Positions 1 to 56,000 of a stretch of 64,000 nucleotides of DNA are shown one piece after another. How positions within the stretch are numbered: position 1 is the stretch's first letter; each line of letters begins with the position of its first letter. The notes beneath the pieces were generated by a model. That model did no database searches. It was given only the letters and a program-made list of their open reading frames with translations, and was not told the origin of the DNA. Made by a program: the position numbers and the translations under genes. The stretch is taken from positions 90,644,001 through 90,708,000 of the forward strand of contig NC_086105.1 in assembly GCF_963921235.1 (NCBI RefSeq), in the 5' to 3' direction. The DNA comes from Mobula hypostoma (taxonomy: Eukaryota).

Positions 1-2857
1 ATGTTCATGCCATCAGGTTGGAGGCTACCCAGACGGAATATAAGGTGTTGTTCCTCCAACCTGAGTGTGGCTTCATCTTTACAGTAGAGGAGGCCGTGGA
101 TAGACATGTCAGAATGGGAATGGGATGTGGAATTAAAATGTGTGGCCACTGGGAGATCCTGCTTTCTCTGGCGGACAGAGCGTAGATGTTCAGCAAAGCG
201 GTCTCCCAGTCTGCGTCGGGTCTCGCCAATATATAAAAGGCCACATCGGGAGCACCGGACGCAGTATATCATCCCAGTTGACTCACAGGTGAAGTGTTGC
301 CTCACCTGGAAGGACTGTTTGGGGCCCTGAATGGTGGTAAGGGAGGAAGTGTAAGGGCATGTGTAGCGCTTATTCCGCTTACACGGATAAGTGCCAGGAG
401 GGAGATCAGTGGGGAGGGATGGGGGGGACGAATGGACAAGGGAGTTGCGTAGGGAGCGATCCCTGTGGAATGCAGGTGGGGGGGGAGGGAAAGATGTGCT
501 TAGTGGTGGGATCCCGTTGGAGGTGGCGGAAGTTACGGAGAATAATATGTTGGACCCGGAGGCTGGTGGGGTGGTAGGTGAGGACTAGTGGGGTGGCGGG
601 AGGATGGAGTGAGAGCAGATGTACGTGAAATGGGGGTTAAGGTTAATCCTAACCTTACTATTAAACCCGCCGATAAGGGGGGTGCTGTTGTAGTCTGGCG
701 TACTAACCTCTACCTTGCCGAGACACAGCCACAACTCACGGATACCTCCTCTTATTTACCCCTCGATCGTGACCCCACTAAGGAGCACCAGGCCATTGTC
801 TCCCACACCATCACCGACTTTATCCGCTCAGGGGATCTCCCATCCACTGCTACCAACCTTATAGTTCCCACACCCCGCACTTCCCGTTTCTACCTCCTAC
901 CCAAGATTCACAAACCTGCCTGTCCTGGCCGACCTATTGTCTCAGCTTGCTCCTGCCCCACCGAACTCATTTCTGCATACCTCAACACGGTTTTATCCTC
1001 CCTTGTTCAATCCCTTCCGACCTATGTTCGTGACACTTCTCACGCTCTTAAACTTTTCGATGATTTTAAGTTCCCTGGCCCCCACCGCTTTATTTTCACC
1101 ATGGATGTCCAGTCCTTATATACTTCCATCCCCCATCAGGATGGTCTCAAAGCTCTACGCTTCTTTTTGGATTCCAGACCTAACCAGTTCCCCTCTACCA
1201 CCACTCTGCTCCGTCTAGCGGAATTAGTCCTTACTCTTAATAATTTCTCCTTTGGCCTCTTCCACTTCCTCCAAACTAAAGGTGTAGCTATGGGCACCCG
1301 TATGGGTCCTAGCTATGCCTGCCTTTTTGTTGGGTTTGTGGAACAATCTATGTTCCGTGCCTATTCTGGTATCTGTCCCCCACTTTTCCTTCGCTACATC
1401 GACGACTGCATTGGCGCTGCTTCCTGCACGCATGCAGAACTCGTTGACTTTATTAACTTTGCCTCCAACTTTCACCCTGCCCTCAAGTTTACCTGGTCCA
1501 TTTCTGACACCTCCCTCCCCTTTTTAGATCTTTCTGTCTCTGTCTCTGGAGACAGCTTATCCACTGATGTCTACTATAAGCCTACTGACTCTCACAGCTA
1601 TCTGGACTATTCCTCTTCTCACCCTGTCTCTTGCAAAAACGCCATCCCCTTCTCACAAGTCCTCCGTCTCCGCCGCATCTGTTCTCAGGATGAGGCTTTT
1701 CATTCTAGGACGAGGGAGATGTCTTCCTTTTTTAAAGAAAGGGGCTTCCCTTCCTCCACTATCAACTTTACTCTTAAACGCATCTCCCCCATTTCACGTA
1801 CATCTGCTCTCACTCCATCCTCCCACCACCCCACTAGGAATAGGGTTCCCCTAGTCCTCACCTACCACCCCACCAGCCTCCGGGTCCAACATATTATTCT
1901 CCGTAACTTCCGCCACCTCCAACGGGATCCCACCACTAAGCACATCTTTCCCTCCCCCCCCTCTCTCTGCATTCCGCAGGAATCGCTCCCTACGCAACTC
2001 CCTTGTCCATTCGTCCCCCCCATCCCTCCCCACTGATCTCCCTCCTGGCACTTATCCGTGTAAGCGGAACAAGTGCTACACATGCCCTTACACTTCCTCC
2101 CTTACCACCATTCAGGGCCCCAAACAGTCCTTCCAGGTGAGGCAACACTTCACCTGTGAGTCGACTGGGGTGATATACTGCGTCTGGTGCTCCCGATGTG
2201 GCCTTTTATATATTGGCGAGACCCGACGCAGACTGGGAAACTGCTTTGCTGAACATCTACGCTCTGTCCGCCAGAGAAAGCAGGATCTCCCAGTGGCCAC
2301 ACATTTTAATTCCACATCCCATTCCCATTCTGACATGTCTATCCACGGCCTCCTCTACTGTAAAGATGAAGCCACACTCAGGTTGGAGGAACAACACCTT
2401 ATATTCCGTCTGGGTAGCCTCCAACCTGATGGTATGAACATCGACTTCTCTAACTTCCGCTGAGGCCCCACCTCCCCCTCGTACCCCATCTGTTACTTAT
2501 TTTTATGCACACATTCTTTCTCTCACTCTCCTTTTTCTCCTTCTGTCCCTCTGAATATACCTCTTGCCCATCCTCTTGGGTCCCCCCCCCACCCTTGTCT
2601 TTCTTCCCGGACCTCCTGTCCCATGATCCTCTCGTATCCCCTTTTGCCTATCACCTGTCCAGCTCTCGGCTCTATCCCTCCCCCTCCTGTCTTCTCCTAT
2701 CATTTTGGATCTCTCCCTCCCCCTCCAACTTTCAAATCCCTTACTTACTCTTCCTTCAGTTAGTCCTGACGAAGGGTCTCGGCCTGAAACGTCGACTGCA
2801 CCTCTTCCTACAGATGCTGCCTGGCCTGCTGCGTTCACCAGCAACTTTTATGTGTGT
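1..2857 (+). mobile_element. Penelope-like retroelement (Neptune-type), young 5'-truncated copy with an inverted 5' arm (1-637 is the reverse complement of ~1786-2441)
   Basis: RT motifs (KPADKGGAVVV, YLLPKIHK, GRPIVS, MDVQSLYT, GVAMGTRMGPSYA, RYIDD) at ~642-1960. After one frameshift in a C-run near 1951-1961 come a Cys-rich linker (CKRNKCYTC) and a GIY-YIG endonuclease (GVIYCVWCSRCGLLYIGET...LRLEEQHLI) ending at 2463. A pyrimidine-rich 3' region and a hammerhead follow. Confidence 0.95.
2761..2798 (+). ncRNA. Minimal type-I hammerhead ribozyme in the PLE 3' region
   Basis: TAGTC-CTGACGA-AGG(GTCTCGG)CCT-GAAA-C-GTC^-GACTG. Intact CUGANGA and GAAA core, stem I TAGTC/GACTG, 3-bp stem II, palindromic loop-less stem III (ACGT), GUC cleavage triplet ending at 2793. 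Confidence 0.85.
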
Positions 2858-4641: not shown

Positions 4642-4830
<189 letters not shown>

Positions 4831-5121
4831 TAAGTCAGCATAGTTTTTTTTCATTCTAAACTTTAGGTGCAGCCTTTATCATTATAAACTTCAGAACCTT
4901 CATATTGTTTTGTTGGAACTTTCCTTCAACTGGATTTCCCTGGTGCATAGTACAAAGAGTGGGCTTGGATATTCTGTTGTGGTCTCATAGATTACATCTA
5001 TTTCGCTAGTTACCAAATGGCTTGGTTCCCTATTGTATAGGAGCCATGGAGAAGGGGTCCTCAGCTTCTGCTGATTTCTCCAGGTAACCCAAACAGATAC
5101 ACCTTCTGTCCTCATCGATGC

Positions 5122-5500
5122 ATGTTTTCAGTGTGTGCCCGTCTGGAGAAATCAACGATAACAGAACATTGCATTCACAATTGCCATAGGACTGGCTTCG
5201 ACAACACAAAACTACTATGCCGCGCCAATAGCTTTTGGGACTCCCTGGTGAAGGAAGCCATTGAAATAAAACCAGAGAAAAAGAATTTTAACAAGGACGA
5301 AGGTCTCCCTCTAAGTAAGAACTGGAATTCGATTGTATACAAGGTGGGACAGTGGATGAGGACTAACCAATCAGGAGGGCTAGACAATGGGGGTAATATA
5401 CCACCGAACTAGACATGCCTAGGTATCAACCCTGATGATCGTCATCAAAGTGTCAGTTAAAATCAGTACCTGTACTTGGCTGAAAACTCGAGATGAGTTT
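5122..5500 (+). mobile_element. Fragment of a second PLE lineage (Poseidon/Penelope-type endonuclease C-terminus plus 3' region)
   Basis: EHC..H...FDNTKLL...KEAIEIK...NFNKDEG..LSKNW resembles the PLE GIY-YIG C-terminus; a degenerate CTGATGA motif lies near 5432. Confidence 0.7.
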
Positions 5501-5904
5501 ATTAGTGAGGTAGGTTCATGGGTTCCATATCCATTCAGAAATTGAATGGCAGAGGGGAAGAAGTTCCTGAATCATTGAGTGTGTGTCTTCAGGCTTCTGT
5601 ACCTTCCCCCTGATGGTAGGAATGAGCAGAGGGCATGCCCTGAGTGATGGGCGTCCTTAATGATGGATGCCACCATTTTGAGACATCGCTCCTTGAAGAT
5701 GTCCTGGATACTACAGAGGCTAGTGCCCATGATGGAGCTGACTGAGTTTACAAGTCTCTGCAGTTTATTTTGACCTTCCCCCCCATAGCAACCTCCCCAT
5801 ACCAGATGACGATGCAGCCAGTTAGAATGCTGTCCATGGTACAGCTGAGAAATTTGCTAGTGTCTTAAGTGACATACCAAATCGCCTCAAACTCTTAATG
5901 AAAT

Positions 5905-7459
5905 CCTAAACACAAGAAAATCTGCAAATGCTGGAAATCCAGAGCAACACACACAAAATGCTGGAGGAACTCAGCAGGTCAGGCTGCATCTGTGGAAATG
6001 AATAAACAGTCAACATTTTGGACTGAGACCCTTCATTGGGACTGGAAAGAAAGGTGAGAAGTCAGAGTAAGAAGGTAGTGGGAGGGGAGGAAAAGTACAA
6101 GGTGGTAGATGATGGGTGAACCCAGGAGATGGGGTGGGGGTGAAGTAAAGAGCTTGAAAGTTGATTGGTGAAAGATCAACCCTACCCTCAAATTTACATG
6201 GTCCATTTCTGACACCTCCCTCCCCTTTCTCCACCTCTGTCTATCTACCAATATCTTTTATAATCCCATTGAATCTCACAGTTACCTGAACTATACCTCT
6301 TCCCACTCTGTCACTTGTAAAAATGCCATCCTCTTCTCTGTTCCGCCATCTCTGCTGTATCTGCTCTTGTGATGAGGCTTTATATTCTAAAGCTAATGAG
6401 ATACCGTCCTCCCTCAAAGAAAGGGGCTTCTCACGCTCCACCATCAACACTGCCCTCACCTGCATCTCTTCCATTTTGGCATGTCTGCCCTCAGCCCATC
6501 CTCCCCCGCCACAACAGAGATGGGCTTCCTCTTGTCCTCACCTACCACCACACTAGCCTCCGTGTCCAGCACATAATTTTCCATAATTTCCACCGTCTCC
6601 AATGGGATCCCACCACCAAGTACATCCTTCCCTCTTCCTCACCCCCCCTCCATTTTCCACTTTCTGCAGGGATCGCTCCCTCTGCAACTCCCTTGTCCAC
6701 TCATCCCTCACCTCTGGCACTTATCCTTGCAAGTGGAGCAAGTGCCACACCTGCCTGTACACCTCCTCTCTCACTACCATTCATGGCCCCTAAGAGTCCT
6801 TCCAGGTGAGACGATACTTCTCCTGTGAGCTTGTTGGGGTTATCTGGTGGCCTCCTGTACATCGATGAGAACCGACGTAGATCGGGAGACCACTTCGCAG
6901 AGCACCTACCCTCCACCAGAAAAAGCGAGATCTCCTGGTAGCCACGCATTTCAATTCTACTTCCCATTCCCATTCTGAGATGTCAGTCCTCTACTGCCGC
7001 GATGAGGCCACACTCAGGTTGGAGGAGCAACACCTTGTATTCTGTCTGGGTAGCCTCCAACCTGATGGCATGAACATCAATTTCTCAAACTTCCAGTAAT
7101 GCCCCCCACCCCCACCCACCATTCCCCATTCCGGTTTCCTTCTCTCACCTTATCTCCTTGCCTGTCCATCACCTCCCTCTGGTGCTCTTTCTTCTTCCCT
7201 TTTTCCATCATCGTCTATCCTCTCCTATCAGATTCCCCTTCCTCCAGCTCTTTATCTCTTTCACCAATCAACTTCTCAGCTCTTTACTTCACTTGCAGTT
7301 TCACCCATCACCTTGTACTTCTTCCTCCCCCCCCCACCTTCTTACTCTGACTACTCCCTTCCCATTCTTGACAAAGGGTCCAGCCCAAAACGTCAGCTGT
7401 TTACCTCTTCCATAGATACTGCCTAGCCTGCAGAGTTCTTCCAATGTTTTGTGTGTGCT
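5905..7459 (+). mobile_element. Decayed Neptune-type PLE with inverted 5' arm (~5905-6178)
   Basis: 13-bp TSD CTCTTAATGAAAT (5892-5904 and 7460-7472); RT C-terminal and GIY-YIG remnants; the inverted arm carries the terminal tail. Confidence 0.9.
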
Positions 7460-7679
7460 CTCTTAATGAAATATAGCCACTGCCGTGCCTCATTTTTAAC
7501 TGCATCAATATGTTGGGTCCAGGATTGATACTCAAAGATATTGACACCTGGGAACTTGACATTGCTCACTCTTTCTATGAGTACTGACTGGTGTGTGTTC
7601 CCTTGTCTTACCATTTCTGAAGTCCACATCAGTTCTTCGGTCTTACTGATGTTGAGGGAGGGAGGGCAGGGAACGTCGA

Positions 7680-7892
7680 CTCAGACCATGAGAGGCCTGT
7701 GTGGGGCATTTTCATGCCTTACAAGGTGCAGATTGGAAGTATGTGTGGGGCGCCACTCCTCACACCAGACACTAGAGCAATGTGTGATTAAGTGCCTTGC
7801 TCAAGGGCACAAACACACTGCCACAGCTGAGGCTCAAACTAGTGACCTTGAGATAACTAGACGAACGCCTTAACCACTTGGCCACGTGCCCA
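7680..7892 (-). mobile_element. tRNA-derived SINE (CORE-like body)
   Basis: Minus-strand A-box TGGCCAAGTGG, degenerate B-box, and GTGCCCTTGAGCAAGGCACTTAA core motif. Confidence 0.7.
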
Positions 7893-8309
7893 ACACAATG
7901 TTGGGTGCAAAGTTATTGCTGCGACACACTTAACTAGCTGATATATCTCACTCCTATATGCCTTCTCATCACCTTCTGAAATTCTGCCAACAGTAGTTGT
8001 ATCGGCAGCCAATTTATAGATGGCATTTGACCTATGCCTAGGTATGGAAATAGAGCAGTGGGCTAAGCACACATCCCTGGGGTGTGCCAGAGTTGATCAT
8101 CAATGAGGTCGAGATGTTATTTCCAATTCACACAGGTTGATGTCTTCCAGTAAGGAAGTCAAGGATCCAGTTGCGGAGGGAGGTACAGAACCCTGGTTCT
8201 GCAGCTTTTCGACCAGAACATTAGGAATGATTGTATTAAACGCTGAGCTGTAGTCAATAAGCAACATCCTGACATAGGTATTTGTATCGAGGGTCTCATT
8301 CAACCTCCT

Positions 8310-9290
8310 TCTCTATTCTGCCATTCATTCATGGCTGATTTTTTTCAACCCCATTTTTCTGTGTTCTCCTTGTAATTCTTAACCCACCTATCAATCTCTG
8401 CCTTAAATACATACAATGACTTGCCATCTATATCTCTGTTACAATAAATGCAACAAATTCACTATCTTCTGCCACAAGAAATTCTTTCTTATCTCAGTTT
8501 TAAAGGGATGATCCTTTGTTTTGCAGCTATGCCCTCAAGTCCTCAATTTACTAATAGAAATGCCCTGTCCAAGTCCATTCTATCCAGGCCTTTCAGTATC
8601 TGGTAGGTTTCAATGAGATCTTTCCGCACATCCTTTTAAACTCCATCGAGTACAGGCCCAGAGACATTAAACCCTCCTCATGTTAAGTCTTTCGATCATT
8701 TTTGTGAATCTTCTGGACACTCTCCAGGGCCACTTCATCCTTCCTTAAATAAAGGACCCAAAGTTACTCACAATTTTCCGCATGCAGCCTGACCAATTCT
8801 TTATAAAGCATCATCCTTGTTTTTATATTCTAGTCTATCTGAAAAGAATGCTAACATTAAATTTACCTTCCTTATTACCCACTCAACCTGCAAGTTAACC
8901 TTAAGGGAACTCCGAAAGCCCTTTGCACCTCTGATTTCTGCATTACTTCCACATTTAGGAAAAGGTCTACGCTTTATTTCTACCAAATAGCACAGCCCAC
9001 ACTTCCTTATGCAGTATTCAACCTGCCACTTCGTTGCCCACTCTCCTAACCTCTCTAGGTCTTTCTGCAGACTTGCTGTCTCCGTAACAATACCTTTCCT
9101 CTGTCTGTCTTTGTATAGTCTGCAAATCTGGCCACAAAGCCATCAATTCCTTAATCCAGATTATTAACGTATAAATTGAAAAGTTGCAGTTCCAACACTG
9201 ATCCCTGCAGACTAGCTAAAAGCAGTCATCTTGAAGAGTACCCCTTTACTCCACTAATTTCTGCCAGGCAGCTGATCTATTCAAGCATTT
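8310..9290 (-). mobile_element. Old CR1 LINE 3' fragment
   Basis: Decayed CR1 RT C-terminal motifs (LKVNLQVEWVIRKVNLMLAF...LEYKNKD). Confidence 0.75.
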
Positions 9291-9301
9291 TCTCTCTAAT
9301 A

Positions 9302-9382
9302 CAGGGGTCCCCAACCTGGGGTCTACAGACCCCCTTGTTTAATGGTATTGGTCTGTGGCATAAAAGAGTTTGGGAACCCCTG
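9302..9382. mobile_element. 81-bp hAT (Charlie-like) MITE
   Basis: TIRs CAGGGGTCCCCAACCT / AGTTTGGGAACCCCTG; perfect 8-bp TSD CTCTAATA (9294-9301 and 9383-9390). Confidence 0.85.
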
Positions 9383-9944
9383 CTCTAATACCATGGGCTC
9401 ACATCTCATTCCTGTGTTTCCCATGTTCTCGGGGTCTTGCTGATGATTTGAAGCTGGCTGGAAAAGCAAGTGTGGAGGAGGGAGGGGTATGGGGTGCATT
9501 GAGTCTGCATGAGGATAGAGGAGTGGCTAAAATATGGAAGATGGAATATAATGTGGGGAAACGTATGGCTCATTCTAGTTCCCCCTTAGCAAGAATAGAA
9601 AATTATTTTTGTTTAACCGGAGAGGGAGACAATGCTGTAGGGGAGGTTTTGGATGTAAATATAGCAGAGGATGTTGAGGAACAGCAAGCAACTAGGAAGC
9701 AAATGTAATGGCCTTTATTGCAAGAATAATGGATTAATAAAGAGAATACTCCTGTGACAACCTTCACCTCTGCTCTGGTCTGTCTACTCAAAGTTGACAA
9801 CTTCTGTTTTTATGTTCTTGCTGCAGCTTCTGATGTTTATATTTCTTTTCAAAGGTTTACCTAGACAGTTTTAATCTTTTAATTTCTATCATCTGAGTAA
9901 ACCTTCATACATTGAGACATAGCTTTCAAGCTTGTTAGTATTGC

Positions 9945-11050
9945 AACAGAAAAAAACAAACTGCTGGACGAACTCTGGGTCAAGCAAAATCTGTGGAAGC
10001 ATTTCAGCTGAAGACCCTGCAAAGAGACTGATGGTGTAGAGAGACAATAGCCGATGTATTGAAGTGAGAGGGAGGGTGAGACAGATGATAGATAGGACCA
10101 GGTAAGGGTGGAGGGGCTGATGAGCAGTTGAAGATGGAGGTGGAAATGGGGGGTAGTAGTGACACAGATGCTGATAAGGACAGGTAGAAACATATTTATG
10201 TATGGAATGACCTGTCTGGAGGGTACACAATTACCAACGGCACTGTATCTCAATGCAAATGTTGGGTATTCGGTGCAGCTTGGGTGTGTTGGAAGGGTGG
10301 AGGAGAGAAAGGTGCTGAGAGGTGATAGGTGGAACCAGATGAAGGAGAAGTGATAAGCAATGGAACCAGGAGGGGAAAGGAATAAGAAAGATGTACCAAG
10401 GAAGAAGACATGTTGATGGATAGGCTATAGACAATGTGCATAGCAACCAACATGAGCTGCTGCTTGTTACATGCCATTTCAGCTCCCCTTCCCATTCCCA
10501 CATCTGTTCTTGGTCCTCTGTACTGCTACAGTGGGGCCAAACGCAAACTAGAACAGCACCTCTATTCCACTTGGATAGCTGACAGCCCAATGATATGAGC
10601 ATTGAGTTTAATCCATGTCCCGTGTTCCTTTCCTACTTCCAGCAGTCTGCCAGGTTCCTTTTCCCTTTGTTCACCTTTCTCCATCCCTCCCTTTGTCACC
10701 AGGACTTGTTACCCTTCCCCACCTCGTTCCATCTGCCCATATTCCTCCCTACCTGCCTCTGCCTCATCCCCATCCCCATCCACACCCCTCAGTTTCATCC
10801 ATTTGCTGTCTTTCCTCTACACCAGCAGTTCCCAGCCATGGGTTCACACACCCCTAGGTTAATGTTAGGGGTCAATGGCATAAAAAAGGTCGGAAACCCC
10901 CGTTCTACACTCAGTCCTGATGCAGGGTTCAACCCAAAACACTGACAGTCCTTTTAACCCGACAGATGATTCTAGACTTCCAGAGCTTTGCCAGCAGTTG
11001 TTTTTTTTTCTTATTTTGCAGCATATTTCAGCATCTAGAGTCTCATGCCT
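9945..11050. mobile_element. Old PLE copy with an inverted arrangement and decayed hammerheads
   Basis: Minus-oriented PLE end at ~9945-10150; plus-oriented endonuclease remnant and 3' end at ~10470-11050 (CAGTCCTGATGCAGGG...). Confidence 0.6.
10823..10902. mobile_element. 80-bp hAT MITE, same family as 9302-9382
   Basis: Same length and internal motif (ATGGCATAAAA); 8-bp TSD CTCTACAC/TTCTACAC. Confidence 0.75.
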
Positions 11051-11261
11051 CGAATATCCCAACAGACTTTACAGTTCATTATTTCAGTTGCCCTTCCAAC
11101 TAGTATTAACATTTTGTGTCAAAGGTTCCTGTTCAGGAGTTCCTGTGCACCTATCAGAGTGACATACTTGTAAGAGATGTGACAAAGAATTGACATTAAA
11201 ATATGTGATATAGAACACAAACTGCACTAGGCTGATAATTAATTTTAAAATAAATGCTTAA

Positions 11262-11573
<312 letters not shown>

Positions 11574-11654
11574 TAAGTCAATAGGAGGGAGATGCCAATT
11601 TTAACTTTTTACTCAAAAATTGATGGTAAAAATAAACATCTGGACATAACTTTT

Positions 11655-12039
11655 GGGTAGATGGAGCTCGTCAGCCTCGGAAGGCAGTCCATCTAAGAGA
11701 GGGAAAACTCTGATTTCAAATCTCTGCTGCCTTGTGACCATACCCACTCATGGGAAAGGCTTTGGGAGTAAACCCTGAGGACAAATCGGGAGCTGGAGTC
11801 CCTAAGGCAGTTCGACATTGTCTTCAACCTCGTTCTGGCAACTCCTGTGATGACACCGGTGCCAAGCTGTATTGGCCCTTGCCCTTTCCTTGGACAACAT
11901 CGGTGTCGTGGAGAGGGGAGACTTGCTGCATGCGCAACTGCCGGTCTTTCATACAACTTTGCCCAGGCCTGCGCCCTGGAGAGGAGAAGCAAGACTTTCC
12001 AGGCACAGATCCATGGTCTTGCGAGACTAACGGATGCCA
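11655..12039 (+). mobile_element. Non-coding, probably RTE-derived short retroelement
   Basis: 15-bp TSD CTGGACATAACTTTT (11640-11654 and 12040-12054); RTE-5'UTR-like GGCAGTCCATCTAAGAGAGGGAAAACTCTG; no meaningful ORF. Confidence 0.7.
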
Positions 12040-12657
12040 CTGGACATAACTTTTTAAAAATGTTAGGAATAAATTAAATGACATGATTTTCTAGAATTGT
12101 AAAGATTGAAGAAGTTTTCTTTGGGTTAGAAATTTCAAAATATATTCATGTCAGGTAAGGGTAAGAGATATGAAAACTGAGTTCAGTATCAGTTGGAGGG
12201 AAGTCACTTAAACCTTTCATTTGAGGCATAATGATTGATAACCTGAGCAAATGTCAAAGGGTCAGGTGAAGGCTGTTATGTATTCATTCAAATGGTTGAG
12301 TAATTTGAGCAAGTTGTTAGTATGGTGGATAGATTGTTACCTTGCGTTTAGAATATAATTCCACACAAAAATTTTATTAAAAGTATATTAAGGATCAATT
12401 GCCATTATTTGGAGAAGATATTCCTTACATGTCATAGCCAAACATTGTAGGGTCTAAATACAGATTCATTAGTCATTTCTTTCTGCTCTGTGAGGTAATG
12501 TTTTGCAGAGGATTCCTGTACATTAAATAACTGCTTTTGTTGGTATAAAAAATTGGCAGACTTCAAGACAACTTGTGTTTGAGGGACTGTCTGTGTTGGA
12601 AGCATGTTGAAGGCTCGAGCTCATTTTACCATGTTTGATCTAAATTTGGAAATTTAG

Positions 12658-12984
<327 letters not shown>

Positions 12985-16496: not shown

Positions 16497-16766
<270 letters not shown>

Positions 16767-18573: not shown

Positions 18574-19833
18574 TCACCGAGGGAGCAATGGATCAGGTAG
18601 TGAAGGTGCGTGTGAGCAGTAGCAGCCTTCACCTCCTTTCTCTGGGCCCAGCTCCTGGAAATAGCTGAGGTGCTGGAATCGCAGCACCTCATTCCCCCAA
18701 CTGGTCCACCCAGGCTGCAGGTTGCGAGCAAACAGTTCCAGGCACTCAGCATTACATGGGATAAATCCTTTCAGCACTTCCCCCAGAGGAGGCTTGTGAG
18801 AATGAAGTGTGCAAGGCACACTGACTATAAGCTTGTGGTCAGGTACTGTGATGCTCCTGGTGCCAGGTTCTCCACCCTGCTGTGCTGGGCTTCCCATGTA
18901 ACGTCCAAGGACTAGGATCTCATAGGGCTTCTTGTGAACAGAGTCCAGTGGCACCACAAACTCTCCATTCTTGGTCACCTTCACCCAGTGCCACTCAGCC
19001 ACCACTTCCACCCCCCAGCCGGGGTACAGCTCCTCCTTGACGAAGTGGAGGTGCTTCTGTCGGTTGGTGACCCAGCACACTACCAGGCAGCCAGGGGCAG
19101 AGAGGAGTGGCACAGGGAGCTGGCGGATCTGCCAGGGGAAAAGGTGGCTGTAGCCCTTGCATCTCTTAAGGGACTTGTTCTCCCAGGGGGGGTCCAAAGT
19201 GATCACGTCATACTTATAGCCTAAGAGTGGCTCCATGCGGGAGATGTCCGACAGCAGGAAGGTACATCGCGGTGGGAGCAGATACTGGTGCCCCATCAGC
19301 CTCACGAGCCGGGCACAGCTTGAGCTGTTCTCTGTCAGACAGCCGAGGGGTTCCAGGTCTGCCGCCGACTCACCAGTTAAAACCTGCACCTGCCTCTGGG
19401 GTTCTTCCAGTAGCTGCTTGGCCATGAAGCAGAGCTCTACCAGCATGGAGTCTGCTGGGACCAAAGCTGTCCCTTGCTCTCTGCTGCCTGTCTCCTCCAC
19501 TTCCAGATGTTCCACCAGCTTTTGGGTGCCATTCTGGATTGCCAGACTGACCTTGTCATGGTACTCCAGAGCCTCCACCTGTCCCTGGTTCAGCTCCTGA
19601 CCCTTCCTCTTGCGCTTGCTGCCTTTCATACTTCCGTCATTGACAGCTGACCCCCACCCTGCAGTTTTGGTGTCAACAATGTAAGGCTTCTCCACTTTGA
19701 AGTATTCTGCCCTGAAGACGTATCTGTGGCAGTGTCCATCAGGGGGAGAGTGGTGACAACATCTGTACAACTGGTTGATGTAAGCCTGATGATCCACAAG
19801 CCAGCCCACTGGCTCACTCCTGACCACAGACAT
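18574..19833 (-). CDS. METTL4: METTL4 (MT-A70 family N6-adenosine methyltransferase), single-exon 419-aa ORF
   Basis: N-terminus MSVV...GWLVDH..YIN; YVFRAEYFKVEKPYI; catalytic DPPW(ENKS); CWVTNRQKH; HKKPYE; HSHKPPL; LELFARNLQPGWTSWGNEVLRFQH. No stops or introns. Confidence 0.95.
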   Translation of the reverse strand: MSVVRSEPVGWLVDHQAYINQLYRCCHHSPPDGHCHRYVFRAEYFKVEKPYIVDTKTAGWGSAVNDGSMKGSKRKRKGQELNQGQVEALEYHDKVSLAIQNGTQKLVEHLEVEETGSREQGTALVPADSMLVELCFMAKQLLEEPQRQVQVLTGESAADLEPLGCLTENSSSCARLVRLMGHQYLLPPRCTFLLSDISRMEPLLGYKYDVITLDPPWENKSLKRCKGYSHLFPWQIRQLPVPLLSAPGCLVVCWVTNRQKHLHFVKEELYPGWGVEVVAEWHWVKVTKNGEFVVPLDSVHKKPYEILVLGRYMGSPAQQGGEPGTRSITVPDHKLIVSVPCTLHSHKPPLGEVLKGFIPCNAECLELFARNLQPGWTSWGNEVLRFQHLSYFQELGPEKGGEGCYCSHAPSLPDPLLPR

Positions 19834-20542
19834 TTCCTGATATTGGCAAGCGTGCTGAACTTGACTGTCTGCCCCCAGCTAATGCCCTCTCTTCCTTCCT
19901 GAAATAAATTGCCCCTTTACACTTCACCCATTTCTTTAATTAAATGCCTTCCCGATAACTTCCACTTGCCCTCACACTGAGGTTGTCCCTTCAACTCAAC
20001 AGTGCATCTGCTGAGAAAGCTCTCAGCATATTGCAGCCGTTAGCACCTCAATAGCAGCAGACCCATATCTTCAGAAAGCCAGAATGGAAAGAAGGAATCT
20101 GTGGATTTAAACCAAAAGAAAACATTAATTCATTGGTAAGCAATAATAAATACCTTTTAAGTATAACTAAATTGGTTTATTATTGTCATATGTACTGTAA
20201 TACAGTAAAAAAAAACCTTGTATGCCATCTATACAGACAATTTCACAGCGTATTGAAGTAGTACAAGGGAAAGGTACTAACAGAGTCCAGAATAAAGTGC
20301 TACAGTTACAGAGAAAGGGCAGACAATCAGGTACAAGATGGATTATCGGGGCAAGTCCAATTAACTGTATGAGGGGACCAGTCAATAGAATTATAACGTT
20401 AGAATAGAAATTGTATTTTAAAATGCATAGTGGTTGGAGCTGCAACACTCTCTATAGAGGATGGCTTCTCCGTTCTCATTTAAGAATAACACCTTTGAAA
20501 TTATATAACATTCTATGACAATATGGAACACCTAGACCTGTA

Positions 20543-21940: not shown

Positions 21941-23359
21941 AGAATGTATGCTATATGGTGAGGTTCCTTAGTGATGGATGCCCCTACCTTGAGACACTAC
22001 CTCTTGAAAATGTCCCCAATAGTGAGGAGGGTTGTGCTTGTGATGGAGTTGGCTAAGTCTACATTTATTCAAGGCAGAGTAATAGATTTTTAGATAGTAA
22101 TGAAATCAAGTAGTGAATGCAAGAAGGCTGCCACAGTCTTATGGAATGGCAGAGCAGGGCTTAGGGGTTCAGTGGTTTACTCCCACTTCGATTTCTTGTT
22201 CTGTAGATATTATTTTAGTTATGGGAAAACCAGATCTAATAGATGAACTTCAACTAAATCATAGATGTTCTCTCTGTGAGACTAATTCATTCCCTGCTGG
22301 TCAGTTTTGGAATCTCACTGAGGCAGACTACCCTTCTTACATTTGGTGAAGGAACAATGCAGATGATGGGGCATCAAAACTCATTTTGTGCTTCCACATG
22401 TTAAAACCATAAAATTCGTTTGATTCCAGTTTTTGAGACTGGAATTATGTCAGCTCTTGTGTTTATATTTTTAGGGGAAAATAACATGATTTAATTTACT
22501 GATAATGGCCAGTGTCACGTACAAGTTTGCTGTGTGCCATCCTAATACCTGGAAGTAGGATCAACCCAAGCAATCTTTGCATCCTTAATAAACCTCCTTC
22601 AGTTCAAATGTCTAAAACACATTTGTATGTTGTACTTTAGATTTGTACTGACACCAGAAAGCTGTCAGATTTTTCTGACGTTTTACTTCAAGAACTACAA
22701 TTTCAAATCTACCTTGACTGAGTTTGCAAGTAAAAATAATTTTTGAATATATTGGAGACTTTGGTTTCTTGTTTTTTTAATGTTGCAATAAACGTTAAAT
22801 TAAGTTCAAAATAAATTGTATCTAACTGCAGTTGTTTCTGAAGAGACCTTCCTAAATGAGAAATATAAGGGAATGAATTTATAGCTGGCAAAGCATGACA
22901 AACACTTTGTGAATATCACCAGATCACTTTATGGGGTAGGGATACGAAGGTCAACTCGGGAGAATTCCCTTTCTATAAAAAAAGACGAAAGATTTAATAA
23001 AGCCACCTTGGATAACACACTGAGGGTGAGCTGCAGATCGCCAGTGTGACCACTCAGCTCTGCATTTGGCTTTGAACTCATTTCCCCACACGGCAGTGAT
23101 GGCGTCAACAGACAACCTAGCAAAACTCCAAAGCAAGTCAGTGGTGAAGGCTTCGGGGTTCTAGAACCAAAACTAACGGGTGGAATTGAGGCATGAAGCT
23201 CTGAAGTAGTCTCCTCCTGTTCCTAAACTCATTCCTACAGGTTTCAGCATTTGTCCAAATTGCCAGATGCATTGGTTTAATTTTAATGGAAGGAACGAAA
23301 CGCCGCCTGCCGCAGATGAACTCGAACTCTTTCTGAAATGTGGTTTAAAAAGCGACACT

Positions 23360-23910
23360 CACTTCACTACTGTCGGTCAGAGCTCCTCCATTTGGTTCTC
23401 TGCTGAGGAACTAACCCGTCACAAAGTCCGACCTGGGACAAGCACTTGCTCACTTGGATCAGACCCGGGCAGCGACACATGACAGGAAATTACATCGAGG
23501 AGGAAGTTGCATCGCGCTGATCTCTAGCTCAACACCAATTACATTTACTCAATTTACAGACGATTAAGACTGATTTCCTGTTCCCATTGTAGTCCTACAA
23601 TTTCCGCCGCCTTCCCTTCCCCGTGTCTGTCCATTTCACACTGGGAACTGCTGTTTTCTCTGTTTATCATTCTTGCCTAGCCTGCTGCCGCCTTGCAGCA
23701 CTGTAGCATTTTTAATATTGTAAAGTGCACCGCAGGACCCACCTCCATTGAGGTAACCGCCCCCAAGGACAGTGAGCTGTCTTCCCCTTGGTGCCCGATG
23801 ACGGTCCGTGGTGGAGTTCTGGCTGAAAGCAAAGGCAAGTGTGATTGCCTACCCAAATCAAATGGCAGGGTTATCCGAAAGCATGCAGAAGGCTTACCAT
23901 AGTGCAATGT
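23360..23910 (-). promoter_or_regulatory. Candidate METTL4 promoter and non-coding first exon
   Basis: Repeat-free, CpG-containing stretch with ZNF143/SBS-like motifs (CTACAATTTCC near 23595, CTGGGAACTG at 23641, TTACCATAGTGCA 23894-23906). Minus-strand donor GAA|GTGAGT at 23362; candidate minus-strand acceptor AG at 20099-20100. Confidence 0.4.
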
Positions 23911-24421
23911 GCACCGTTCTCACCTCAGGACTCAGGGCTGTCACAGACCTGAGAGCCAAGCGCAAAATTCAGGATGACACAAATCAAACGGCACCGAGAA
24001 CATGGTGCTGACAGAGAGAGAAGCCGACTTTCATTCAGATGGGACGTTAGAACGAGCCAAGTCTGATGCATACAAGTTTACAGATATATTTCACCGGTTA
24101 ACGTCTTGGGGACCATAATATGTAAATACCAGTCCTTATTTATTCAATGCAGGCTGGCCTTTCAACGACAGAGACTATTCTGAAAACATGTTCTTTCCAC
24201 CATTTCTCTTGGTTCTTCCAATCCTTCAGACCTCATTGCGCTGAGTTTCTGAGGAGCCAGATTATAAGGTGTTGACATGGGATTGAGTGACATTGACACT
24301 TGCCACTGAATCTCTGAAACCAGTCTCATTAGGGACGGGTGGGGGGAACGGGGAGTGTTTTTGGATGAGGAGACAAAAGATTTTATTAGGCATGCATCAT
24401 GGAAATAAAACTGAATCACAG

Positions 24422-29662: not shown

Positions 29663-30019
29663 GGTGAGGTAAATTACACCACAGTGTATAATGACTTCTT
29701 GCAGACAATTCTACAATTTTATTCCCTTTTGTAATTATCTTAATTTTACATTAAACACAATTATATAATATATAATAGCAATAAATATATAACTTTTGTA
29801 ATGTTCTCAACTGATACAATATTTTGTATAATTTCAGCATTATGTATAATTTAATGGTAAAATATTATGCACAATTCATCTGTAGTGTTGCATGTTATAC
29901 ATTATGGATATTGCATATTGAACACTACTATCTATTTCGGATTAAGGATTAACAATTTATACAGCATATAACATTTAGCACAGTTCTGCTAATATTCCGT
30001 TTCTTGTGCTATCCTGCCT

Positions 30020-30195
30020 TTCCCGCCGCTTGCAGGAAAGCAGTGACGTCACCGGAATTTTCATGAATGAAATCACGTGGACAAACAGCGACTGACGTCA
30101 GAGCTGGTTCCCGGAACTGGTGACCCGGTAAGAGCGCGTGTGGACCCTGTCGGCTGGTCAAGCGCGCACCGCTGGATGCGTGTTACAGCGAGGTA
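30020..30195 (+). promoter_or_regulatory. CpG-rich promoter and probable non-coding first exon (likely of MAFK)
   Basis: Two perfect CRE sites TGACGTCA (30044-30051, 30093-30100), ETS-like CCGGAA (30052-30057), E-box CACGTG (30074-30079), STAT-like TTCCCGGAA (30108-30116). Donors CCG|GTAAGA (30128) and GAG|GTAGGG (30193), followed by a G-rich intron start. Confidence 0.6.
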
Positions 30196-48344: not shown

Positions 48345-48546
48345 TTCTAAACAATAGAACAGTTGTTGGGCTTGGTTCAGCATGATTTCTACAACACAGA
48401 CTATCTCAGTGTTGCTCTATTTCTTAAATTGTGGTGAATGTAAGATTTTTCTTTTACTGATGAAATATAAGAATAACAGTTTGCAAATTTTTGCTTGCCT
48501 TACTCCTACAGTGCATTTTCAAACTGTTTTGGGTGTTGACAGTGTA

Positions 48547-48582
48547 ATGACGGCTAACTTTAAAGGACACAAAGCATTAAAG
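48547..48582 (+). CDS. MAFK: Small Maf first coding exon (MTANFKGHKALK); exon probably 48512-48582
   Basis: 12-codon exon ending AAG|gtaagc, the same layout as vertebrate small Mafs (MAFK MTTNPKPNKALK); acceptor tcctacag ends at 48511. Confidence 0.85.
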
Positions 48583-55610: not shown

Positions 55611-56000
55611 GTGAAGAAGGAGGCCGGAGAGAATGTCCCGACCCTCAGCGACCAGGAGTTGGTCTCCATGACAGTCAGAGAACTGAATCAGCACCTGCGG
55701 GGCCTAAGTAAGGAGGAGATTGTCCAGCTGAAGCAGCGGCGGCGGACACTGAAGAACCGGGGTTATGCAGCCAGCTGTCGGGTCAAGCGCGTGACGCAGA
55801 AGGAAGAACTGCAGCGACAGAGAACCGATCTCCAGCAGGAGGTGGCCAAGCTGGCCCAGGAGAACGCCAACATGAGAGTGGAACTTGATGGCTTGCGCAC
55901 CAAGTATGAGGCCCTTCAGAAGTACGCTCGCACTATGGCCAAGACCCCTACCCTACCCCCCACCAGTGTCATTACCATTGTCAAATCATCTGACTCCTAG
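55611..56000 (+). CDS. MAFK: Small Maf bZIP main exon (VKKEAGEN...[21 protein letters not shown]...TSVITIVKS)
   Basis: Phase-0 acceptor gatag|GTG; extended homology region, basic region and leucine zipper. VKKEAGEN and linkage to TMEM184A favour MAFK, although some residues are MAFG-like. Confidence 0.85.

Follow-up and report, generated by a model that had tools for sequence, protein, structure and literature searches.

The window analysed here (64,000 nucleotides of contig NC_086105.1 of the ray Mobula hypostoma) contains a METTL4 gene whose coding sequence is a single reading frame on the reverse strand, flanked by a TMEM184A-like gene and a MAFK-like small-Maf gene (Table 1). METTL4 lies tail-to-tail with TMEM184A and head-to-head with MAFK, about 10 kb from the first exon of the latter. 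Both neighbours, already named in an earlier note made from the letters of this stretch, proved to be real genes of the forward strand, with PF03619 exons between 4.6 and 13 kb and a small-Maf gene that spans 30.0-57.7 kb and has canonical GT/AG dinucleotides at all its exon borders. A CRE-like motif (TGACGTCA) and an E-box-like one (CACGTGAC) occur at 30043-30120, the core of the MAFK promoter and first exon. This core is 79-85% identical to the sequences of Pristis, of Callorhinchus and of the batoid that is the source of the RNA contig L005 (see below), so that non-coding sequence has been conserved here for more than 400 My. A 484-codon open frame (582-2033, forward strand), located ahead of the TMEM184A-like exons, gives a weak RVT_1 match (E 5e-5, below the gathering score) and is probably a retroelement remnant. 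The last coding exon of TMEM184A would be expected at about 16579-16615. No AATAAA or ATTAAA polyadenylation signal occurs between the METTL4 stop codon and position 16700.

Table 1. Features of the METTL4 locus, with positions counted from the first letter of the window
Feature	Position	Strand	Evidence and remarks
TMEM184A-like gene, three exons	4642..12984 (open-frame pieces 4642-4830, 11262-11573, 12658-12984)	(+)	PF03619, E 1e-7 to 3e-22; borders approximate
METTL4 CDS	18574..19833	(-)	Single unbroken ORF of 419 codons plus stop, ATG start (ORF list)
5'UTR part of the METTL4 coding exon, ~265 nt	19834..20098	(-)	Aligns with Pristis and RNA contig L005 down to the ATG
Polypyrimidine tract ending ...TTTAAATCCACAG, 3' splice site of the 5'UTR intron	20099..20130	(-)	Conserved; L005 departs from the genome right after the AG
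CpG-richer patch (CpG o/e 0.53-0.61), candidate upstream exon/promoter	23001..24200	(-)	Conserved with Pristis
MAFK exon 1, non-coding, CpG-rich promoter core	30012..30192	(+)	Spliced contig L005; GT donor after 30192
MAFK exon 2 with start codon (MTANFKGHKALKV...)	48512..48582	(+)	AG and GT flanks
MAFK last coding exon (bZIP_Maf)	55611..56000	(+)	PF03131, E 1e-30; 3'UTR onward to ~57750

The protein encoded by the METTL4 frame is full-length, as the earlier note had read it from the ORF list. Its N-terminus (MSVVRSEPVGW) resembles those of other vertebrate METTL4s, a KRKRK basic patch and the conserved N-terminal region are present, and the Pfam MT-A70 domain (PF05063) is found at residues 208-382 (E 4.9e-37, 127.9 bits for a cut-off of 23.9) and covered whole (model positions 1-172 of 172). 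A frame of 419 codons would stay open by chance with a probability of about (61/64)^419, roughly 2e-9. Among solved structures the best match is Arabidopsis METTL4 (7cv6, E 5e-46), METTL3 chains reaching only E ~5e-7, and all named entries among the best 120 database matches are METTL4. Judging from these structure scores and names, and from the tree described below, the ORF is orthologous to METTL4 and not to METTL3 or METTL14. The DPPW motif reported in the earlier note is indeed intact (D214-P215-P216-W217) and is accompanied by two further catalytic residues, Tyr228 and Lys347. In the alignment with the structure match, D214/P215/W217, Y228 and K347 fall on D233/P234/W236, Y247 and K364 of the Arabidopsis enzyme, in which mutation of D233, Y247 and K364, including the Gate-loop Tyr and the Lys, shows that they are needed for activity (PMC9512776). 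These catalytic residues are invariant in an alignment of 14 vertebrate species. METTL4 is known to convert Am30 of the U2 snRNA to m6Am (PMC7498333; PMC7324582; PMC9512776), and its activity on DNA (6mA) is debated (PMC9716733). Because of the conserved residues and its homology to human, fly and Arabidopsis METTL4, the ray protein is predicted to be a monomeric SAM-dependent N6-adenosine methyltransferase acting on U2 snRNA Am30, and possibly producing DNA 6mA. Nothing in its sequence hints at an altered function, and the enzyme appears ordinary.

At its two ends, the protein departs from those of bony vertebrates. The N-terminal linker lacks about 25-30 residues compared with the proteins of sturgeon, gar and bowfin, in agreement with the short linker noticed earlier. 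By contrast, GNEVLRFQH, previously taken for the C-terminus, is not the end of the protein: some 30 further residues follow, in a Cys-containing tail common to chondrichthyans. This chondrichthyan-specific extension (window 18574-18670, protein residues ~390-419) runs about 25-35 residues past the end of bony-vertebrate METTL4, and a Gly and a Cys in it (G400 and C404) are invariant. It might have arisen by read-through into the former 3'UTR after retroposition.

Among the best 120 database matches listed, the closest proteins to that of this ray are the METTL4s of Mobula birostris (97% identity), Pristis (84%), the L005 batoid (77%), Narcine (73%) and six sharks (65-67%), and the next after the chondrichthyans are bird, sturgeon and amphibian METTL4s, with 46-55% identity. 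A single-exon METTL4 beside TMEM184A was found in four rays, five sharks and Callorhinchus. The gene range equals the length of the CDS, with a PF03619 gene downstream, in eight genomes, among them this ray, the other Mobula, Pristis, Scyliorhinus, Chiloscyllium, Heterodontus and Heptranchias, and a PF03619 gene adjoins METTL4 in each of the eight other chondrichthyan loci. On the other side of the gene, MAFK sequence upstream of METTL4 was seen directly in this ray, in Pristis (bZIP_Maf) and in Callorhinchus, as well as on the RNA contig L005. NCBI already annotates the locus as METTL4 in these chondrichthyan genomes.

The METTL4 of Callorhinchus, a holocephalan, was located through a search of proteins representative at the 50% level. 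It is annotated as 'partial', with 459 aa in a range of 1617 nt, and frame 0 of that range is one continuous ORF of 538 codons. The annotated 237-nt 'intron' of Callorhinchus milii (L007:11000-11320) is an in-frame 30-nt minisatellite that adds about nine extra GPGLTPAPGS units and falls where the MT-A70 domain has a variable loop. Public annotation of this gene is thus wrong, having taken a minisatellite for an intron. Unlike the elasmobranch copies, this CDS is GC-rich (76% GC, GC3 0.89) and its ORF lies within a CpG island. TMEM184A lies 3.3 kb downstream of it. At 5.6 kb upstream, a 78-nt stretch matches the core of MAFK exon 1 (79% identity, E 4e-13) and is oriented relative to METTL4 as in the ray. 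Every sampled species of crown Chondrichthyes therefore has an intron-free METTL4 CDS next to TMEM184A. The insertion, which the earlier note had called old and proposed to date by synteny across sharks, rays and chimaera, is shared by all three and far older than one ray lineage.

In a maximum-likelihood tree of 26 METTL4s, the chondrichthyan sequences form a single clade (99/96) inside vertebrate METTL4, split first into Callorhinchus and the elasmobranchs; batoids and sharks branch as in the species tree. The stem branch of this clade (0.23) is not longer than those of tetrapods (0.26) or ray-finned fishes (0.25). The terminal branch of Callorhinchus is long (1.23), and its sequence deviates in composition. 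As the gene tree tracks the species tree, a contaminant or horizontally acquired origin of the ray gene could be ruled out.

The earlier note had described the gene as intron-less, which holds for the CDS and fails for the 5'UTR. A splice acceptor about 265 nt upstream of the ATG (~20098/20099) is conserved in this ray, Pristis, Heptranchias and Chiloscyllium; the motif was not found in Callorhinchus. Evidence for its use comes from L005, a Logan contig (SRR11241619) from the related batoid mentioned above. This contig must derive from RNA, since its three MAFK exons join exactly at the canonical GT-AG borders of the window, and beyond them it contains, antisense to MAFK, the METTL4 ORF in full. 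Downstream of the acceptor AG, L005 equals the genomes; directly upstream of it stands a block that in Pristis lies 4.2 kb farther upstream. This switch at a conserved AG marks a 3' splice site in use, and the METTL4 gene has therefore gained at least one 5'UTR intron, whose splicing is seen in the RNA of the related batoid. Such gains are frequent in functional retrogenes (PMC4772013). Two further junctions of L005 (L005:2395-2420 and 2780-2795), one where the antisense of MAFK exon 1 meets the middle block and the other at the donor end of that block, correspond to no canonical GT/AG sites in Pristis or the window; they may stem from exons particular to the lineage of that batoid, from non-canonical splicing or from contiguity of these sequences in its genome. 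In Heptranchias perlo, the interval from acceptor to ATG (L002:9250-9950) contains a long G-rich tandem repeat with units like GGGGAAGGCCAAGTTAGAGGGG, and with this expansion the 5'UTR part of the coding exon reaches about 840 nt, compared with about 265 nt in rays.

The ORF of the ray and its immediate upstream sequence are CpG-poor (o/e 0.11-0.39). Two CpG-richer spots occur in the spacer between METTL4 and MAFK, one at 23.0-24.2 kb and the other at MAFK exon 1 (29.8-30.2 kb, o/e 1.07). Within the first, positions ~23680-23760 are a partial homologue of the upstream non-coding (middle) block of L005. A look-up of the ray protein matched the source assembly and brought up no transcript contigs. 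Small sequencing runs guessed to be RNA (86-241 M letters, from the same and two sister organisms) contained 0.96-1.00 of the ORF stretch, and mostly the upstream 2.5 kb too (0.71-0.98), so that exon and intron are not clearly separated in them. In one run of a sister species the values were 0.64 for the ORF stretch and 0.17 upstream, which is suggestive only.

The structure of METTL4 in other chordates bears on how the single coding exon came about. The sturgeon gene has 8 coding exons over ~13.3 kb, with no neighbour within 10 kb; that of the zebra finch is multi-exon, covers 16 kb and faces NDC80 head-to-head; and in amphioxus 9 coding exons are spread over 30 kb, the neighbours of the gene being neither NDC80 nor MAFK/TMEM184. 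For sturgeon and amphioxus, exon junctions were set at the GT-AG sites that reproduce each protein and then mapped onto the protein alignment. Six of the seven sturgeon CDS introns coincide with amphioxus introns both in alignment column (within one) and in phase (0, 0, 1, 2, 0 and 1), and none of the seven is present in the ray ORF. Since these six introns are common to sturgeon and amphioxus in position and phase, they predate vertebrates. The comparison thus indicates that an intron-rich METTL4 is ancestral and that the intron-less CDS of chondrichthyans is derived, contradicting the possibility, raised in the earlier note against its own reading, that an intron-less gene was the ancestral vertebrate state. 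Retroposition characteristically leaves this pattern, in which every intron disappears in one step and the gene turns up at a new locus. The retroposition put forward in the earlier note is in keeping with the seven sturgeon introns missing from the ray copy and with a locus different from that of the zebra finch. As that note had also remarked, no poly(A) tract or target-site duplication is visible in the window downstream of the METTL4 stop codon. Over more than 400 My such traces would be erased, and their absence does not argue against retroposition, although the mechanism is to that extent inferred. We consider it very likely that chondrichthyan METTL4 is a retrocopy which originated in the stem lineage of the group and seems later to have replaced its multi-exon parent, that is, an 'orphan' retrogene.

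Such a replacement, raised in the earlier note as a possibility, requires that the parent be gone. The database proteins contain one METTL4 per species in eleven chondrichthyan species, and protein searches of annotated proteomes returned no second chondrichthyan METTL4 among the best 120 matches listed within the length window. When a profile of eleven elasmobranch METTL4s was searched, the last elasmobranch in the best 120 matches listed scored 810 bits and the next proteins, from birds, 536 bits. An intact annotated parent is unlikely on these figures, because a surviving one should score nearer to the retrogene than do bird orthologues. The multi-exon parent was probably lost in chondrichthyans, and its replacement can be held as probable from these protein comparisons. 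The retrogene could also be real and its parent survive elsewhere, unannotated or mis-annotated, in which case the copy would be a duplicate instead of a replacement. The searches leave some room for this, covering as they do annotated proteomes and the best 120 matches within a length window, but a surviving parent would have to have escaped in eleven species that each show exactly one METTL4, despite the drop from 810 to 536 bits at the birds and the fact that NCBI gives the name METTL4 to the MAFK/TMEM184A locus in all these genomes. We regard this alternative as unlikely.

Even less probable, and to our mind very much so, is that the position between MAFK and TMEM184A is the ancestral gnathostome locus, that the chondrichthyan introns were lost in place through recombination with a cDNA and that bony vertebrates moved the gene to NDC80. 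The neighbours of amphioxus METTL4 leave the ancestral position unsettled and the sturgeon gene, without a neighbour within 10 kb, is likewise compatible with this history, which however demands the simultaneous loss of at least seven introns across the CDS and a separate translocation in Osteichthyes. Intron loss mediated by cDNA usually takes a few adjacent introns. Ordinary retroposition, by contrast, provides relocation and complete intron loss in a single step.

Pairwise NG86 dN/dS values for six chondrichthyan CDSs are 0.17-0.36, with bootstrap 95% upper bounds of at most 0.47, and within elasmobranchs the methyltransferase half (0.09-0.19) is more constrained than the N-terminal half (0.19-0.34). 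Chondrichthyan METTL4 is under purifying selection, as the earlier note had supposed, and its dN/dS is not near 1. That the ORF is a young or neutral processed pseudogene, open by chance in repeat-rich surroundings and with no CpG island directly upstream, has a negligible probability and is effectively refuted by cross-species selection and conservation, the frame being open in 11 species over more than 400 My, with dN/dS of 0.17-0.36 and invariant catalytic residues, and occurring in the spliced RNA of a related batoid.

The probable history of the METTL4 retrogene is then as follows. On the stem of the cartilaginous fishes, before chimaeras parted from sharks and rays, reverse transcription of a spliced METTL4 mRNA would have produced a copy that integrated between TMEM184A and the 5' end of MAFK. 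The retrocopy would have gained expression and retained the enzyme function under purifying selection, and the multi-exon parent would have been lost afterwards. Transcription of the copy would begin farther upstream, at a non-coding exon within the spacer that METTL4 and MAFK share. More tentatively, and as a possibility that we hold to be somewhat doubtful in its entirety, all living cartilaginous fishes may have depended for more than 400 My on this orphan retrogene, which would have survived via the divergent MAFK promoter region and a new 5'UTR intron. If true, this would be among the oldest parental replacements documented in vertebrates, and a writer of m6Am in the spliceosomal U2 snRNA would be coupled to small-Maf regulation. 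It would also show, in deep time, how a promoter-less copy came under regulation by way of a conserved 5'UTR intron and the gene that faces it head-to-head. The intron-less METTL4 at TMEM184A provides a clean synapomorphy for Chondrichthyes, and studies of m6Am or 6mA in cartilaginous fishes should consider that the regulatory context of METTL4 would differ there from that of bony vertebrates. A literature search on METTL4 as a retrogene or intronless gene returned nothing on its retrogene nature, its age or its position at MAFK/TMEM184A. The class of orphan retrogenes and the annotation of the locus are known; what appears to be new is the retrogene nature and unusual age of this METTL4.

As a protein, ray METTL4 is very much like its known relatives (human METTL4, Drosophila CG14906 and Arabidopsis METTL4, PDB 7CV6), with which it shares a collinear full-length chain, the MT-A70 domain, the DPPW motif and the Tyr and Lys residues, and in whose tree it nests as the chondrichthyan branch. 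It is 46-55% identical to the METTL4s of bony vertebrates, from which it differs in its shorter N-terminal linker and in its chondrichthyan-specific Cys-containing tail of ~25 residues. As a gene, it has one coding exon instead of the 8-9 of bony vertebrates and amphioxus, and occupies the MAFK/TMEM184A locus instead of lying beside NDC80 as in the zebra finch. The full replacement of a conserved, housekeeping-type parent by a retrogene is rare, and the documented cases are mostly mammalian. Orphan retrogenes, i.e., processed copies that functionally replace their parents, include RNF113A, MARS2 and TRMT12 (Ciomborowska et al. 2013, PMC3548309; Carelli et al. 2016, PMC4772013). Chondrichthyan METTL4 resembles them in its intron-less CDS derived from a multi-exon gene, the apparent absence of the parent, purifying selection and an orthologue-like position in the tree; the event, placed in the chondrichthyan stem, is older than the mammalian cases (PMC3548309, PMC4772013). 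Retrocopies are known to be expressed by recruiting upstream promoters, new 5' exons or the bidirectional promoters of head-to-head neighbours (Carelli et al. 2016, PMC4772013). METTL4 is similar to these in being head-to-head with MAFK, in its conserved 5'UTR acceptor and in the batoid RNA that links the antisense of MAFK exon 1 to METTL4. It differs from the cited bidirectional cases, in which the spacer is at most 2 kb, by the ~10 kb that separate it from MAFK in the ray, where the CpG-richer patch at 23.0-24.2 kb is an alternative candidate for the start of transcription.
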